Below, piece by piece: positions 29,573-38,039 of a stretch of DNA of 64,000 bases. The stretch covers positions 3,906,001 to 3,970,000 of the forward strand of contig CP075497.1 in NCBI GenBank assembly GCA_021613535.1, read 5' to 3'. The position numbers were made by a program, and so were the translations under genes. Each line of letters starts with the position of its first letter. Position 1 is the stretch's first letter. Source of the stretch: Adineta vaga. Lineage: Eukaryota > Animalia > Rotifera. Under the pieces are notes generated by a model. It was given only the letters and a program-made list of their open reading frames with translations. It was not told where the DNA came from and searched no databases.

Positions 29573-31037
29573 ATAAAATGTGATTATATATGTGTATATT
29601 GAAATAGAATGATATGACAATTATTTGACGAACGCTTTTTCATATATATCATAATCTTTTTATTTTGTTAAATTAGAAATCTTTCGATGAAATGAAATTG
29701 ATTGGTGATGTATGTGTATCGATAAAGATCCAAATTTATCATCTCATTAGTATTACTCTTTTTATCTCTGTTCAACAAATATCTATGTATAAAACTGATC
29801 TCAATGCCAATGACACAGCAAACGTATTAGCTATGAATGTATATCTATGCTTTGCCATATCCAATAATATATATATATAGTGATGCCGCTAACTATGATG
29901 AAACAAATTCAATTATTTGATACATAATTGCTTTGACCCATAGAAGTATATAATACAATCTAAGATATGCTGTTGATTTGTGACGAAATAACATGCATAT
30001 TATTGATTCATGAAGTATGATTTCTTCTAAACTTGAAAAAAAAACCGTCTATCGAGAACATTCGATGGTTATTACAATAGAAAGAAAAGAATTATGCCAT
30101 AGAAATGAAGTTACCGTTATCTTCTTCTTGCAATTCTTATCGAAAAATGCTGAAATTCGTTTAGACTACACAATATGATTGAAAGTATGACTACTCGATT
30201 GTGCAATAGTTTCTTCGACAGCAGTAGTATAAATAGGTACGAAAAAGATTGTATCATTACAATACTCAAAAGTAACTACACGGTTGATTGTCACAACTCC
30301 GTCGTTGTTAGTACTTTAGCTTATTTTCAAAATTCTTCGTAGTCTGAAGACTTTTTTACAGTCTTCTCAAACGCTTTCCGGTCTTCGGGTGGTACGTTCC
30401 AACACATGATGAATGTGGGGAAGCCCGGCTTTCTTCTATCGAAAGATGAAGCTAACGGGCCCCACGATTTCTATCACTGGAGGCCCTTCTCTCAAGTATA
30501 TCTATCAGTCAACACGATTATATAGATGTGTGTTTGATCGAAGACATTACTTGATGTTAGAGGTTCCAGTTTATCCGGCGAACATCATGATAACTCAAAT
30601 TATAAATCTGATCTTTTCTGTTTTTAAAAGAAGTATATCTATCATTTTTCGTTTATACATTTTAGGTATGATAGTATCAAGATCAAGAAATGGGAAATTA
30701 TTCGAAAAAATAATAATATGTACCCACACTTCAGTAATTGATCCAATAGTAAGGTGAAAGTACAAAAAGTGATTTCCCATAAAACTTGACTGAATGGTGT
30801 CTGAAGTAGAGAAATTCAAATCTGATGTTAGTTTTTTTCAAAATTTTATAAATGAATCGTTTGGTAATATGATTACTATGTGAAAGAGCTGAATGAGTCA
30901 TCGGATGAACGTTACTTGTCTAAATAAAATATCTTAATGGATTTGAAATAAAGAATAAATTTTTATTGTTAAAAATTTTGAAAAAAAAAGATAAAGATAA
31001 ATTAGAAGAGGAATAGTTTCTCTTTAATGATGATACA

Positions 31038-32928
31038 TTATTTAGATGTATTGATTGTTTCGAGATAAGATCTCCATCCACCCAAATCTGTTATATCCTG
31101 TGCAGTATCCAGAGCTGATGATTCAACTAGAAAACCTTTGACAATTTGTTCATCTTCAAGATAAATATTTCCAATCGAAAGTGGTGATGAAATTAAATGA
31201 ATAAAACTTGCTACATGTTCATTTGGAAGTGCCGATATTTCTAGTTCAATACCGGGTCCTTGACTACCAATCTTACGTATTAAACCGGGTTTAGCTGGTG
31301 TCGTATTTTCAAGGGCATATAGACGATATTCATGATGAGTACGACATGTACGAATAAGTCGACCATTTCGTTCAGTTAATTGATAATTCAATGGTTGACC
31401 GGATAAATGAGCACGGATAACAGCTATATGAAAACAATTCGATGATATACTACTATTCTGATTTGGTAGTAATCTTGGTGTATTTGATAATAGACGTTTT
31501 GAACCACCGATGTTAATTGAAAATAAACGATGAATACGATCTCCGTAAGAGAAGGGCATTATCTGTAAATGCATGACTAATTAAAGTAACACCAAATGGT
31601 AATCCATCTGAACGTATACCAGCAGGTATAGCAATTGCAGCAAGATCAAGTAAATTAACAGAATTTGTATAATATCCAAGATGACTATTATATTCAATAG
31701 GTGTACCATTGATTTCATCAATTGTGTAGGCTCGAGGTGCCGTTGGAACTAACATAACATCGAAATTCTTCCATAACTTATCTACTTGTTTCTTTAATCG
31801 TTCAAGTTCGTAAAGACCATTGAATGCATCGACTGCTGTATACTTCTTTGCGTTGGAAATAATTTTATAGACGGTTGGATCTGTATGCGCTTCATGTTCA
31901 TCAATAAATTGTCCAACAGCAGCGTATCGTTCGGCTACCCATGGGCCTTTGTAAAGTAAGGCAGCAACATTGAGAAATGGTGTAAAATCAAATTCAATTG
32001 CTTGACCATTTAAATCACGTTGAATAGTATCAATGATGTTTTGAAATAATTTAGGATTTTCCATATCACCAAAGAATTCACGTGTTTTAATTGTTGGAAT
32101 ACCAAATCGAAACGTTGACGAACTGATCCAAGGTGTTGCACCTAATGAAGATGACATTTGACAAGAATATGGATCTAATTCATCAAAATCACAAGTAACG
32201 GAGAAGATAATGGCAGCATCCGATGCTGTTTCTGCAAAGACAAAAATACAATCGAGACTACGACAAGCAGGTATAACACCGCGTGTACTAAGAAGTCCTC
32301 GAGTGGGTTTCAGTCCAATGACATTATTGAACATTGCAGGAACTCGACCAGATCCAGCCGTATCAGTTCCTAATGCAAATGTTACCTATTTTTATTGAAA
32401 TTTTTCAAAGTAATTTAATTTTTAAAGCGAAATAGTACTTACTAAACCACTTGCTACAACGACTGCAGAACCCAAACTTGAACCTCCGGAAATATAGTTT
32501 TCATTGAATACACTTGCGCAAGCACCATATGGTGTCCTTGTACCGACTAAACCTGTTGCAAATTGATCCATATTAGTTTTACCAATAAGAATTCCACCTG
32601 CTTGCTCAAGTTTTTCAACGACCGGAGCATTTTCAGTTGCTGTTTCACAAGCAAATGCTGGGCATCCAGCGGTCGTAGGTAAATTAACTACATTTACATT
32701 GTCTTTTACTGCGAATGGAATACCATACAGTCGAAATTTAGAACGATCTTCCGTTGGTATAGTCAACAATTGTTTCACTCGTTTCATAACATTTTCTCGA
32801 GATATAATTGAAATCCATATGAGATTCATATTTTCTTTTTCTATACGATCGTAAAGAGAATTAATCGTATTCAAAAGACCATTTTGATCACTTGAATAAA
32901 GATTATGAAGTTCGTTGATATCTGGCAT
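31038..32928 (-). pseudogene. atzF: Allophanate hydrolase (AtzF / amidase half of DUR1,2), one intron, frameshifted
   Basis: Amidase signature LYGIPFAVKDN, GKTNMDQFATGLVGTR, GGSSLGS and GTDTAGSGRVPA, plus LYKGPWVAER and C-domain AHLSGQPLN..GGWRSY. Intron 32442-32386 (GTAAGT..TAG). Frameshift near 31549 (ALL then YGDRIHR in another frame). Confidence 0.9.
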
Positions 32929-33377
32929 TGATATTTGTTAATTCTAAAACTAATTCTCATTCAGATGAAAATATATCGAAATTAGACAAGTTCCACGTAT
33001 CATAGTCGTACACACCTTGCAAAACTATATAACAGATTCTTTGAAATATGATAATGTCCACGTACTAATCAGCTCAAATACCTTTCTAATATTTTAGAGT
33101 AGATAGGAAGAAAAATATTTTTACTTCTTCTCTAAAAGATGGTGATTATGCGATTAGTATTGTGATGTGGATTATTAGACGCCCATCTAACATTTGTTTG
33201 AAAAAAACAATAGGGTGAAGTTTTGTAAACAAAAGTGAGGAGAGATAGTTTTTGATGTTCGAAATAACCTTGTCACATAAATGGTTGACGAGATAAATTT
33301 TGTGAAGACATATATATATATATACGCACACATATCCTTCCAATTGGTAAATAATTCGTTTGAATATCACAGATAAA

Positions 33378-36300
33378 ATGACAAACTGTGTCCCAAAAAA
33401 TGATCCTTTATTCAAATCGATACTTATTACCAATCGTGGTGAAATTGCAGTACGTGTTGCTCGTACTTTACGTAATCTTGGCATTGAAAGTATTGCAATC
33501 TATTCAGAAGTTGATCGTAATTCTGGTCATGTTATTGCAGCTGATCGTGGTATTGAATTGAAAGGTGCTTCGTCAAGCGAAATTTATTTACGTAATGATT
33601 TAATTATTGAAGCAGCAAAAGTACAAAAAGCTCAAGCTATTTTTCCAGGTTATGGATTTTTATTAGAAAACGAAGATTTTGCTCGTGAATGTGAATCTGC
33701 TGGTCTTTGTTTTATTGGTCCTACTCCAGAACAAATTCATCGACTTGGTCTTAAACATATTGCTTATGAACTAGCAGCTGATGCTAATCTACCACTTTTA
33801 CCTCATACAGGTCTTCTGTCTGGTTTGGACGAAGCTAAGAAAGAAGCATCTACTATTGGATATCCAATTATGTTGAAAAGTACAGCAGGTTCCGGTGGTA
33901 ATGCTATAACACGATGTTCAACTGAACAAGAATTAATCATTGCTTTTGAAAAAGTACGTCGTGCAGCAGTTAAATTCTTAAAAAATGATGGTATTTATAT
34001 GGAACGCTGCATTGAAGATGCTCGTCATATTGAAGTACAAATATTTGGCGATGGTCATGGTCATATTGAAGCAATTAGTGAACGAGATTGTTCTTTACAA
34101 CGTCGTAATCAAAAAATAGTCGAAGAAGCACCACCACCTAATCTATCCGATGATACACGTGCTCGTCTTCGAGATTCAGCTATTCGACTTGGTTCTCTAG
34201 TCAAATATCGTTCGGCTGGTACTGTTGAATTTATTTATGATAGAACTTCAAATGAATTCTACTTTCTCGAAGTGAATTGTCGTTTACAGGTAGTATATGT
34301 TACATTTTATACTGCTATTATTATTATTCCTCTTATAATAGGTAGAACATCCGGTTACTGAAACTATTTTTAGTATTGATCTTGTTGAATGGATGATTAA
34401 ATTAGCAGCTGATCAACCGCCAGATACTTTGTATAATTTACCATCACCAACAGGTGCCTAGATCGAAGTTCGAATCTGTAGTGAAAATCCTTTGCATGAC
34501 TTTCGCTCATCTTCTGGTACACTTCATGAAGTAACATTTCCAAATAATATTCGTGTAGATACATGGATCACAAATGGTAGAGAAGTGTCACGTTATTATG
34601 ATTCTTTATTAGCTAAAGTCATTGTACATGGTAAAAATCGTCAAGAAGCTATTGAACAAATGTGTCATGCTCTCGAACAAACTTGTTTTATTGGTATTGC
34701 AACAAATCTTGATTTTCTTCGTCAAGTCATTGGCTCATCGATATTTACTAGTGGTGATGTTTCTCTCAAAGTTTTAACAGATTGTTTTAAATATAAACCT
34801 AATGCTATAGAAGTATTAGAAGCAGGTACCTATACAACTATTTAAGATTGTCCTGGTCGTGTTGGTTACTGGAATATCGGTGTACCGCCATCAGGTCCTA
34901 TGGATGACTATGCATTCCGTCTTGCTAATCGTTTAGTTGGTAATAGCGAAAATGCTGCTGGACTTGAATGTACATTTATTGGACCTGTATTACAATTTCA
35001 TCAATCAACAACGATCGCTATTACAGGTGCAACAATGAATGCAACGCTTGATGATATTTCTCTTGAATTATGGAAACCAATATATGTTGAAAGTGGACAA
35101 ATATTACGACTAGGACGAGCTACAATTGGCTGTCGTACTTATATTGCTATTCATGGTGGTTTCAATGTTCCAGTCTATCTTGGTAGTCGTGCTACTTTTG
35201 TTCTTGGAAAATTTGGCGGTTATGCTGGTCGAATATTAACTTTAGGTGATATATTATTTATTGATACATGTATTGTTGATAAAGTTCCATCTGTTGTATC
35301 AAATGATATTATTCCACACTATCCAACTGATGGTCAAGAATGGCAAGTTTCTGTTTTATATGGACCTCATGGTGCACCAGACTTCTTTACTTCTGATTAT
35401 ATTCAAACATTTTTTGCTACTTCATGGCAAGTTCATTATAATTCAAATCGTCTTGGTATACGTTTACTAGGACTAAAACCAACTTGGTCTCGTACAAATG
35501 GTGGTGATGCAGGTTTACATCCTTCCAACCTTCATGATTGTGAATATGCTATTGGTAGTATTAACTTTACTGGAGATACACCAGTTATTCTTACACAAGA
35601 TGGACCAAGTTTAGGTGGATGTGTTTGCCCACTTACTATTGTTAAAGGAGAACTCTGGAAAATTGGTCAAGTTAAACCAAATGATCGTATTCATTTTCAT
35701 CCAATCACATTTGATCAAGCACTAACAATAGAACAAAATCAAGATAGTTTAATATCTACATTAATACCATCACCCTCAATTTCTTCTATTTCACCAATAA
35801 ATCAAACGTTTGAATGTATTCTTGGTGCATTAAGTGCCACAAACACACGACCACGTGTTCTTTATCGTCAAGCAGGTGATCATTATATTCTTATTGAATA
35901 TGGTTCAATGAATCTCGATATACATAATCGATTTCGTGTTCATTTTCTTATGGAAGAATTAGAAAAACATCATCTAATTGAAGGAATTTTAGAATTATCA
36001 CCAGGTGTTCGTTCACTTCAAATAAAATATGATAGTCGAATAATTCATCAACAAAAACTAATGAAGGAATTACTTGCTACTGAAGATCGTTTACCATCTG
36101 ATTATCATGGTTTACGTGTCAAAAGTCGTATTGTATATTTACCCCTTACTTTCGAAGATTCAGCTACACTTGATGCTGTCAAACGGTATCAAGAAACGGT
36201 CAAGGAATCAGCACCTTGGCTACCAAATGATGTTGATTTCATTCAACGCACCAATGAACTTTCTTCTCGAGATGATGTACGGAAAATTGTTTTCTATGCT

Positions 36301-37080
36301 TCCTATCTAGTTCTTGGCCTTGGGGATGTTTATCCTGGTGCACCATGTGCAATACCAATTGATCCACGCCATCGTCTCGTTACATTAAAATATAATCCAG
36401 CACGTACATTCACAGCTGAAGATACTGTTGGTATTGGTGGTGTTTATATGCGTATTTATGGTATGGATTCAGCCGGTGGTTATCAATTGATTGGTCGTTC
36501 TTTACCGATATGGAATACATTTATTTGTAATAATGCATTTAAAGACGGAAATCCATGGCTTTTGAGATTTTTTGATCAAGTTCGATTTTATCCTGTTGAT
36601 GAAAAAGAACTTTTAATTCAACGATAAGCGTTTCGTGATGGACATTTACAAATACGTATCATTGAAGATAATGAATTTGATTTAAGTGAATATGATGAAT
36701 TTCTTAAACGTGAATCAGAAAGTATTACGGATTTTATTAAGAAACGCGGTGCCGCTTTTGATGAAGAAGTTTCACATTGGCAAAAAGATATTGAAGAAAA
36801 AGATGATTATTTAGACAGTAATCATGATATTCATGAAATAGAAGAAGAAATTGATGAAAAAGTAACATTAATTCGTGCTGATGTTTGTGGCAGTGTATGG
36901 AAATTATTAGTGAAACAAAATGATGTTGTCGAAGCGAATACACCTGTTGTTATTCTTGAAGCCATGAAAATGGAACTAGTTCTTCGTTCTCCTATTGTTG
37001 GTAGAATTACATCTATTCTATGTCATGTTGGACAACTTGTTTCTACAAATGAAGTTCTTCTGAAAATTGAATCTGTTTAA
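33378..37080 (+). pseudogene. uca: Urea carboxylase (biotin carboxylase + carboxyltransferase + biotin carrier), one intron, three in-frame stops
   Basis: ITNRGEIA, PGYGF, ERDCSLQRRNQK and RLQ|VEHPVTE (intron 34290-34341); HPSNLHD..GSINFTGD, KYNPART and biotinylation motif EAMKME. In-frame stops TAG 34459-61, TAA 34843-45 and TAA 36625-27; terminal TAA 37078-80. Confidence 0.92.
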
Positions 37081-37301
37081 GTTTTTAATATTTCCTTGCA
37101 ACAAAATAAAAATTATTTTTTCATGAGAAATCGTTTGAATCAATCTTCAGTTTAATTGAATGTTCAATTGTTTCTAGTGACATCTAGATTAGCCGCACAA
37201 TACCATTGCAGAGTTGTCGAGAATATGACTCAGAGTATACATCAATCAGAAAATCTTCTTTTTTTTGTAATCACACACATTTCTTGTGTAAGCAAAGTAC
37301 G

Positions 37302-38039
37302 ATGAATCAACTATTACGTTTTCGTTCGATAGTTTCATTTTTAAATCGAACACCAATTCGTCCCTTTCATTTATCTTCTACACGATCAATTGAATGGGCT
37401 GATATTGATGAATATACGAATAAAGTGAACAATTCAGTTTTCTTAACAACTGATGTTTATGAAAAAGATGGTAATATAATCATTTGTTTTCATTTCTCTA
37501 ATACATAATTTTTCGATTTTTCAATAGATGAATGGATTCAATTTGAAGCTCGTCAAAATGAACGACTGCGTAAAAGACGTGAAGAATTTCTTCTTGGTCC
37601 ACCAAAACGTAAATCTGTTTCATCAACCAACAAAGATTCAAAAACATGTCCATCAGCAGGAAAATTTACTCGAATGGAACCGGATGTTAAATATGATCCC
37701 GATGATGATCGACCAAGACAAATGGATGATCCATATTTACCATCACCACATAAATGTGTCTTTTGTGAAAACAATCTGAAAATTGATTTTCGTAATACCG
37801 AATTACTTAGTCAATTTATTTCTCCTCAAACTGGTTTTGTTTTCAATCAACGTACGACTGGTTTATGTTATTTCAAACAAGTTGAACTTGAAAAAGCTAT
37901 TCTCAAAGCTCGTCGTTTTCATCTCATGCCATATAAATGGAAAGAAACCGTTTATTTAGATGATCCACGTTTGTTTAATCCCTATGATAACAATATGAAG
38001 AAAGTGATTAGCGAAGAAAAAGAAAAATTTGGACATTAA
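37302..38039 (+). CDS. MRPS18C: Mitochondrial ribosomal protein S18 (bS18m, S18C-like)
   Basis: Arg-rich mitochondrial presequence MNQLLRFRSIVSF. Intron 37471-37527. S18 core KCVFC..IDFRNTELLSQFISPQTG..TGLC..Q..KAILKAR..LMP. Confidence 0.85.

Follow-up and report, generated by a model that had tools for sequence, protein, structure and literature searches.

Does the bdelloid rotifer Adineta vaga carry a working pair of bacterial-type genes for the degradation of urea at this locus, or the remains of one? The question is raised by a 64,000-nucleotide stretch of its chromosome assembly (hereafter the window; C6:3906001-3970000 in an assembly of 6 contigs totalling 100.8 Mb), in which a urea carboxylase gene (UC) and an allophanate hydrolase gene (AH) stand head to head. 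A first-pass annotation of the window had described the pair as a complete, domesticated and functional module on a bidirectional promoter. Our analysis points to a different answer. The window probably holds a recently pseudogenising duplicate, one of two A. vaga copies of a two-gene urea-degradation module of bacterial derivation. The other copy, here called copy 2, is intact.

The identity of the two genes is clear from their Pfam domains. In the open reading frame (ORF) map of the 30.9-37.3 kb region, the minus-strand pieces at 32928-32422, 32334-31513 and 31574-31038 match Amidase, Amidase and AH_C in that order, which identifies AH (AH_C, PF21986, has E = 6e-41 at 31038-31574). The plus-strand pieces at 33378-34361, 34492-34845, 34900-36627 and 36910-37080 match Biotin_carb_N with ATP-grasp, Biotin_carb_C, CT_A_B with CT_C_D, and Biotin_lipoyl, which identifies UC. 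This is the domain order required for urea carboxylase (EC 6.3.4.6), with the biotinyl domain last. The annotated layout was also exact when read on the DNA: the two ATGs, at 32928 and 33378, are separated by 449 bp, and each gene has one host-type GT-AG intron, of 57 nt in AH and 52 nt in UC.

The module cannot be called complete, as had been claimed, because it contains three in-frame stops in UC and one frameshift in AH. The full-length UC frame of the assembled haplotype is interrupted at 34459, 34843 and 36625. The first stop is a TAG at 34459..34461 (+), at codon 40 of exon 2; the only contigs covering this site, from DNA runs X3 and X6, have TCA (Ser) instead. The second is a TAA at 34843..34845 (+), at codon 168 of exon 2, which replaces the Gln of a TTxQDxPGR motif; this Gln is invariant in copy 2, in four rotifer sequences and in 20/20 bacteria. 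The third is a TAA at 36625..36627 (+), at codon 762 of exon 2, where copy 2 has Gln. In AH, two nucleotides that are present in copy 2 and on the other haplotype are missing at 31544..31545 (-), within the sequence ...FTDNALLL/GDRIH.... AH homologues align on both sides of this point, but in two different frames, and the deletion separates the Amidase frame from that of AH_C in the assembled haplotype. Three of the four lesions are therefore substitutions and the fourth is a 2-nt indel. The parental exon-intron structure has been kept despite these disabling mutations, as in an unprocessed (duplicated) pseudogene.

The public gene models do not reveal this damage. NCBI model I4U23_028469 (582 aa) bypasses the AH frameshift by skipping 31455-31536 as an artificial intron, while the UC of the window is split into separate models, of which the C-terminal one, I4U23_028471, is 676 aa long. 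Two ways of reading through the breaks were considered and rejected. A variant genetic code in which TAA and TAG specify Gln, as in ciliates, does not fit a locus that has a 575-codon stretch free of TAA and TAG and CAA as its Gln codon throughout; AH and UC moreover both end at TAA, with no TGA nearby. Additional introns spanning the breaks were likewise rejected: the sequence around the UC stops is conserved and can be aligned, and no intron would fit between the two AH frames, which overlap.

Six-frame searches of the assembly revealed exactly one further copy of each gene, at C6:12.18 Mb on the same chromosome and 8.2 Mb away. In this copy 2 (G000:C6:12176228-12182494), all frames are open, including 444 codons of AH exon 2 and 915 codons of UC exon 2. 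The genes are head to head as in the window, and their introns, of 47 and 49 nt, occupy the same codon positions. The AH of copy 2 is 100% identical to the NCBI A. vaga protein I4U23_031111. Its full-length UC gave no 100% match at NCBI and may be mis-modelled too. Nucleotide identity between the window and copy 2 is 80.4% over 31037-32937 and 82.7% over 33371-37119. A larger duplicated block was looked for with tblastx and blastn by comparing the entire window with the 26 kb that surround copy 2, and homology was confined to these two intervals; neither the intergenic region nor the flanks align between the copies. The paralogues differ by dS 0.47 and dN 0.125 (omega 0.27), and this omega indicates that both copies were constrained through most of their history. 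In the AH tree, an Adineta ricciae-type sequence (the cluster of P0124) joins copy 2 and leaves the window copy outside (96% and 98% SH-aLRT), from which it follows that the duplication is older than that species split. If the function has been retained by the animal, these sequences suggest that it rests on the copy at C6:12.18 Mb.

DNA reads provide a view of the second haplotype. The module stretch was found in DNA runs of at least four studies, and the best run contains 0.71 of its words. A fraction no higher than this would be expected of Logan contigs that retain a single allele where two differ by ~2%. Two DNA runs, X3 and X6 (from 2013 and 2015, X6 being the 2013 run), each show ~90-96 differences from the assembly over 5.9 kb. 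In contigs of both runs, an 'AA' inserted behind 31544 restores the AH frame as ...NALLLLGDRIH..., exactly as in copy 2. Run X6 contains contigs with and without this insertion, at about half depth each, so the frameshift is taken to be real and heterozygous. At the first UC stop, the other haplotype carries 34460 A>C and 34461 G>A, which together turn TAG into TCA.

The module is almost invisible in RNA-labelled data. Eight A. vaga runs labelled as RNA, with labels that are guesses, contain 0.00-0.03 of the module words. Only three short contigs were found in them, with depths of 2.7-9.4, at 35167-35325 and 36649-37012, as would result from DNA carry-over or from transcription that is weak at best. 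Open allelic ORFs were also sought in the protein collection, and the sole matches were the NCBI models from this assembly.

Comparison of the two alleles suggests that selection has been relaxed on both. The allelic differences examined are a subset of 40 rows picked by the tool, with a further 81 rows outside it. Four of the listed differences lie in the AH intron, and the rest fall in 33 codons, with 27 nonsynonymous against 6 synonymous changes. On these listed differences alone, with 4196 nonsynonymous and 1243 synonymous sites, the allelic omega is ~1.3. In binomial tests, the 27:6 ratio is compatible with neutrality (P = 0.35) and incompatible with the paralogue omega of 0.27 (P = 6e-5). 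The allelic ratio of nonsynonymous to synonymous changes thus looks neutral, and purifying selection appears to have been lost at the window copy. When polarised by copy 2, other rotifers and bacteria, 11 changes are derived on the assembled haplotype and 11 on the other. Invariant residues have been changed on each: G44R in AH and F427C in UC on the assembled haplotype, and G13S, P217L and G256S in AH and D189E in UC on the other, where G13S replaces the Gly directly after the nucleophile Ser. Since the other haplotype is free of at least two of the lesions and yet has invariant-residue changes of its own, both alleles appear to have been unconstrained since they diverged. The accumulated damage is visible at the level of the protein family as well. 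Of ~516 columns in which 53-55 homologues agree without exception, 22 are altered in the window copy and 5 in copy 2, with two altered in both, and in UC exon 1 of the window an invariant Gly of the ATP-grasp glycine loop has become Ala. With its four lesions, neutral-looking allelic divergence and near absence from RNA-labelled runs, the window copy does not merit the description "domesticated".

Several observations weigh against a decaying duplicate. A relative-rate test on all residues is flat, with for example 63 against 60 unique changes. The catalytic motifs KDN, GGSS, GTDTAGSG, AMKM and NSNR are retained on the assembled haplotype, where the amidase-signature triad of AH (Ser-cisSer-Lys, in KDN, GGSS and GTDTAGSG) is intact, and the biotin-attachment Lys in EAMKME is alike in the UC of the window and of copy 2. 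It is because the overall rate is not raised and the core motifs survive that we regard the loss of constraint as recent. The 33 allelic codon differences are a tool-chosen subset, and the RNA labels being guesses, the RNA contigs cannot prove that a transcript is absent. Neither of the two DNA runs showed the TAG of the assembly at 34459; both have the alternate form only. A haploid assembly may also mix both haplotypes, in which case the four lesions need not share one molecule. Some of these points would suit a heterozygous null, in which one haplotype still encodes an open, working UC and AH and only the assembled haplotype is dead: the AH frame is restored on the other haplotype, which also has Ser at the first UC stop, the catalytic motifs are conserved, and no overall acceleration is evident. 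We nevertheless consider this unlikely. The changes AH G13S, P217L, G256S and UC D189E are derived on that very haplotype and affect residues invariant in rotifers and bacteria, the 27:6 ratio looks neutral, and the RNA-labelled runs are almost without module words. Among the listed differences, moreover, only the frameshift and the first stop are scored on the other haplotype, and the stops at 34843 and 36625 are not among the sites seen open there.

The remaining readings of the locus are less probable still. That the window holds a complete, domesticated and functional module might be argued from the presence of all domains, both introns and the divergent layout, and from the protein-coding models that NCBI annotates here; with three stops and a frameshift that those models evade through artificial introns and splitting, with 22 invariant-column deviations against 5 in copy 2, and with the failure of a variant code, it is very improbable. 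Errors of assembly or polishing, or a contaminant or chimeric join, seem to us barely credible. The assembly is haploid and based on long reads, and its TAG, which did not appear in the two DNA runs, might be cited in favour of error, but in the 2013 run each form of the 2-nt indel is represented by contigs of about half depth, as a heterozygous indel predicts, and substitutions, which account for three of the four lesions, are atypical of long-read errors. Contamination is at odds with the recovery of the module in DNA runs of several studies, and with a chromosome-scale contig of 13.9 Mb (13,893,210 bp), an adjoining mitochondrial-type ribosomal S18 gene, host-type introns and host-like GC. 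The GC content of the window is ~30-35% throughout, with ~33% in the UC/AH module and no step at its edges. The same features uphold the annotated integration of the pair in an animal chromosome.

The origin of the pair in bacteria, which had also been proposed, is supported by homology searches and trees. Gene models were searched exon by exon, and exon translations were joined only locally, for residue mapping. The best matches of UC are from Adineta steineri and Rotaria sordida (69-75%), together with bdelloid-like contigs. The next are bacterial, at 56-61%, and include a Xanthobacteraceae metagenome-assembled genome (MAG), Bradyrhizobium, Roseomonas, Enterovirga and others. For AH, bdelloid matches at 65-76% are followed by Acidobacteriaceae at 53-64%. 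The rotifer sequences of each gene form a single bdelloid clade among bacterial sequences, with SH-aLRT values of 100% for UC and 97% for AH. Animal entries among the best 120 matches of these length-limited searches were limited to bdelloids and one flagged contaminant. The latter, P0092, 'UNVERIFIED_CONTAM: Urea amidolyase [Trichonephila clavipes]', lies within the proteobacterial UC radiation and represents bacterial contamination, not an animal case. When representatives of 50% clusters were searched, the next clusters were fungal fused amidolyases.

These fungal DUR1,2 enzymes (Kluyveromyces lactis structures 3VA7 and 5I8I, Vanderwaltozyma, Fusarium) resemble the rotifer pair in providing a eukaryotic, nickel-free urea route through the same two activities, and the UC part of the K. 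lactis protein aligns along the whole of copy 2 UC exon 2 with 917 bits. They differ in being one fused polypeptide of ~1830 aa, with UC identities to the rotifer of 45-49%, and their AH part scores 305 bits against 646 bits for a bacterial AH.

The two genes do not share their closest bacterial relatives. The rotifer UC is 59-61% identical to alphaproteobacterial urea-type UCs, as found in the urtABCDE-UC-AH operons of Bradyrhizobium ontarionense and a Xanthobacteraceae MAG (L009, L010, L094, L096), which have the same domain order and Asn in the NSNR motif. Such rotifer-like UCs mostly adjoin an AH, and in 3/4 sampled loci with an adjacent AH, genes of a urea-type ABC transporter lie beside the pair. 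The partner AH consists of Amidase and AH_C, as in the rotifer, but in 4/4 loci it shares no more than 42-43% identity with the rotifer AH. The bacterial genes are co-directional and ~20 nt apart or overlapping, whereas the rotifer genes are divergent, contain introns and have no adjoining transporter genes. The nearest bacterial clade to the rotifer AH is instead found in guanidine-type operons of Acidobacteriaceae, in the order DUF1989-DUF1989-carboxylase-AH (L008, L011-L061). This arrangement occurs in 42/42 loci of the type that have a rotifer-like AH and a scorable neighbour, and their carboxylase is 45-49% identical to the rotifer UC, with Asp at the NSNR specificity site. Five such genomes contain no second carboxylase of the family. 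A single bacterial donor was considered and set aside, as no sampled genome pairs a rotifer-like UC with a rotifer-like AH. Judged by these affinities, the UC most likely came from an alphaproteobacterial-type lineage and the AH from an Acidobacteriaceae-type lineage, that is, from two different bacterial sources. We favour two transfers on this basis, with a single transfer from an unsampled donor as a possible alternative.

The head-to-head arrangement is present in other bdelloids, as a search of related genomes for the pair and its introns revealed. An ENA contig (ERZ26165376, here L091; 1.83 Mb, GC 50%) carries the pair in divergent orientation too, and its two introns coincide in position with those of A. 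vaga. In this sequence (L091:1-14745) the AH intron keeps the reading frame open, and the gene caller translated straight through it; a vanadium-chloroperoxidase-like gene, another candidate foreign gene, adjoins the pair. In Rotaria sordida (L092; CAJNOU010000740.1), the pair is again divergent and the AH intron is shared, while ~6 kb without any called gene separate the two starts, as if the shared intergenic region had received an insertion. By comparison of Adineta, L091 and Rotaria sordida, the arrangement and the introns are older than the split of these lineages.

A history of the module can be sketched from these comparisons. Two bacterial genes, an Asn-bearing UC of alphaproteobacterial type and an AH of Acidobacteriaceae type, would have been acquired by a bdelloid ancestor, and would have been joined head to head and have gained one intron each before Adineta and Rotaria separated. 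The 6-kb pair would have been duplicated later, with the spare copy now decaying and still heterozygous. In its broadest form, this scenario has the bdelloid ancestor building a cluster from two unrelated bacteria under one shared control region, the cluster being kept through the Adineta-Rotaria split and then undergoing a 6-kb duplication and allele-by-allele decay in an ancient asexual; we put it forward tentatively, as a serious candidate that falls a little short of an even chance. In its working form, as predicted from the enzyme families, UC would carboxylate urea to allophanate, using ATP, bicarbonate and a biotin arm that swings from the biotin carboxylase (BC) to the carboxyltransferase (CT) domain. 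AH would then split allophanate to ammonia and CO2, without a requirement for nickel.

Whether urea is indeed the substrate deserves consideration, as a preference for guanidine is predicted for ~75% of the bacterial genes that carry a urea carboxylase annotation (PMC12186494). At the level of the family, the bdelloid pair might thus belong to the guanidine carboxylase route, and the nearest bacterial relatives of its AH do reside in guanidine-type operons. AH, however, acts on allophanate in both routes. According to a review, the two kinds of carboxylase can be told apart by an active-site residue, which is Asn in those for urea and Asp in those for guanidine (PMC12186494). The motif NSNR, with Asn, is present in the window, in copy 2, in all rotifers and in the best 120 bacterial matches, whereas DUF1989-linked and Nitrosomonas-type carboxylases have SDR, with Asp, at the same column. 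This column is presumably the residue meant in the review. In having Asn, the rotifer UC agrees with that of K. lactis and with the carboxylases that are linked to ABC transporters for urea, and DUF1989 (carboxyguanidine deiminase) had no match in the A. vaga genome. A guanidine route therefore seems rather improbable, and degradation of urea is the preferred reading for the family.

The genomic context of nitrogen metabolism in A. vaga includes at least five arginase-family loci and two loci for UT-type urea transporters. UreD and UreF were found nowhere in the genome. A urease-like locus was observed at G000:C2:13456296-13459292 (L093:3296-6292), comprising a Urease_gamma ORF, a Urease_alpha match with three stops and two short Amidohydro_1 pieces. 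This fragmented locus may be a decayed or an intron-rich urease, and it bears on whether UC and AH would be the sole urea route of the animal.

The first-pass annotation had described the pathway as not a standard one in animals. It is not unprecedented, since a pair from the whitefly Bemisia tabaci has been published. The whitefly genes BtUCA and BtAtzF were horizontally acquired, encode active enzymes and steer nitrogen recycling; the recycling of urea nitrogen was demonstrated by enzyme assay, RNAi and 15N labelling (PMC4607527, PMC10836729). The likeness is that of an animal with bacterial UC and AH genes among its host genes. The acquisitions are independent, however, and the whitefly genes are reported to be gammaproteobacterial and located on separate scaffolds. 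The bdelloid genes are adjacent and head to head, have one intron each, show discordant affinities and are duplicated, with the window copy broken. No paper linking bdelloids with UC or AH was found in the searchable library.

With bdelloid gene transfer and a working animal UC and AH already known, the window adds a case rather than a kind. It does correct the reading of a locus at which public annotation masks the lesions by artificial introns and split models. It also illustrates, in a dated and heterozygous case, how a redundant pair of foreign genes decays in a diploid asexual, with different damage on each haplotype. Considered alongside its intact counterpart, the window copy suggests a nickel-free route of urea degradation in rotifers that can be tested, and the possible assembly of a eukaryotic gene cluster from two donors.

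The anatomy of the window copy can be summarized from left to right. AH is read on the minus strand from its ATG at 32928. Exon 1 (32443..32928, 162 codons) encodes the N-terminal part of the amidase with the KDN Lys and the GGSS cis-Ser. The AH intron (32386..32442, -, GTAAGT...TAG) is at a position common to copy 2, L091 and Rotaria sordida. Exon 2 (31038..32385, -), in which the frame is broken, encodes the remainder of the amidase with the GTDTAGSG nucleophile motif, followed by AH_C, and ends with TAA at 31038-31040. The divergent intergenic region (32929..33377) is presumed to contain a shared promoter. UC is read on the plus strand from 33378. Its exon 1 (33378..34289, 304 codons) encodes Biotin_carb_N and ATP-grasp. 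Its intron (34290..34341, +, GTAGTA...TAG) lies between ...CRLQ and VEHP..., at a position common to copy 2 and L091. Exon 2 (34342..37080, +), interrupted by the three in-frame stops, encodes Biotin_carb_C, CT_A_B, CT_C_D and the biotinyl domain with AMKM, and ends with TAA at 37078-37080. On the left flank, for which NCS and LIM neighbours had been annotated, Pfam scans of single ORFs gave no match. Just to the right of the UC stop, a Ribosomal_S18 ORF of mitochondrial type (E = 5e-15) is located at 37674-38039 (+), in agreement with the MRPS18 neighbour that had been annotated.

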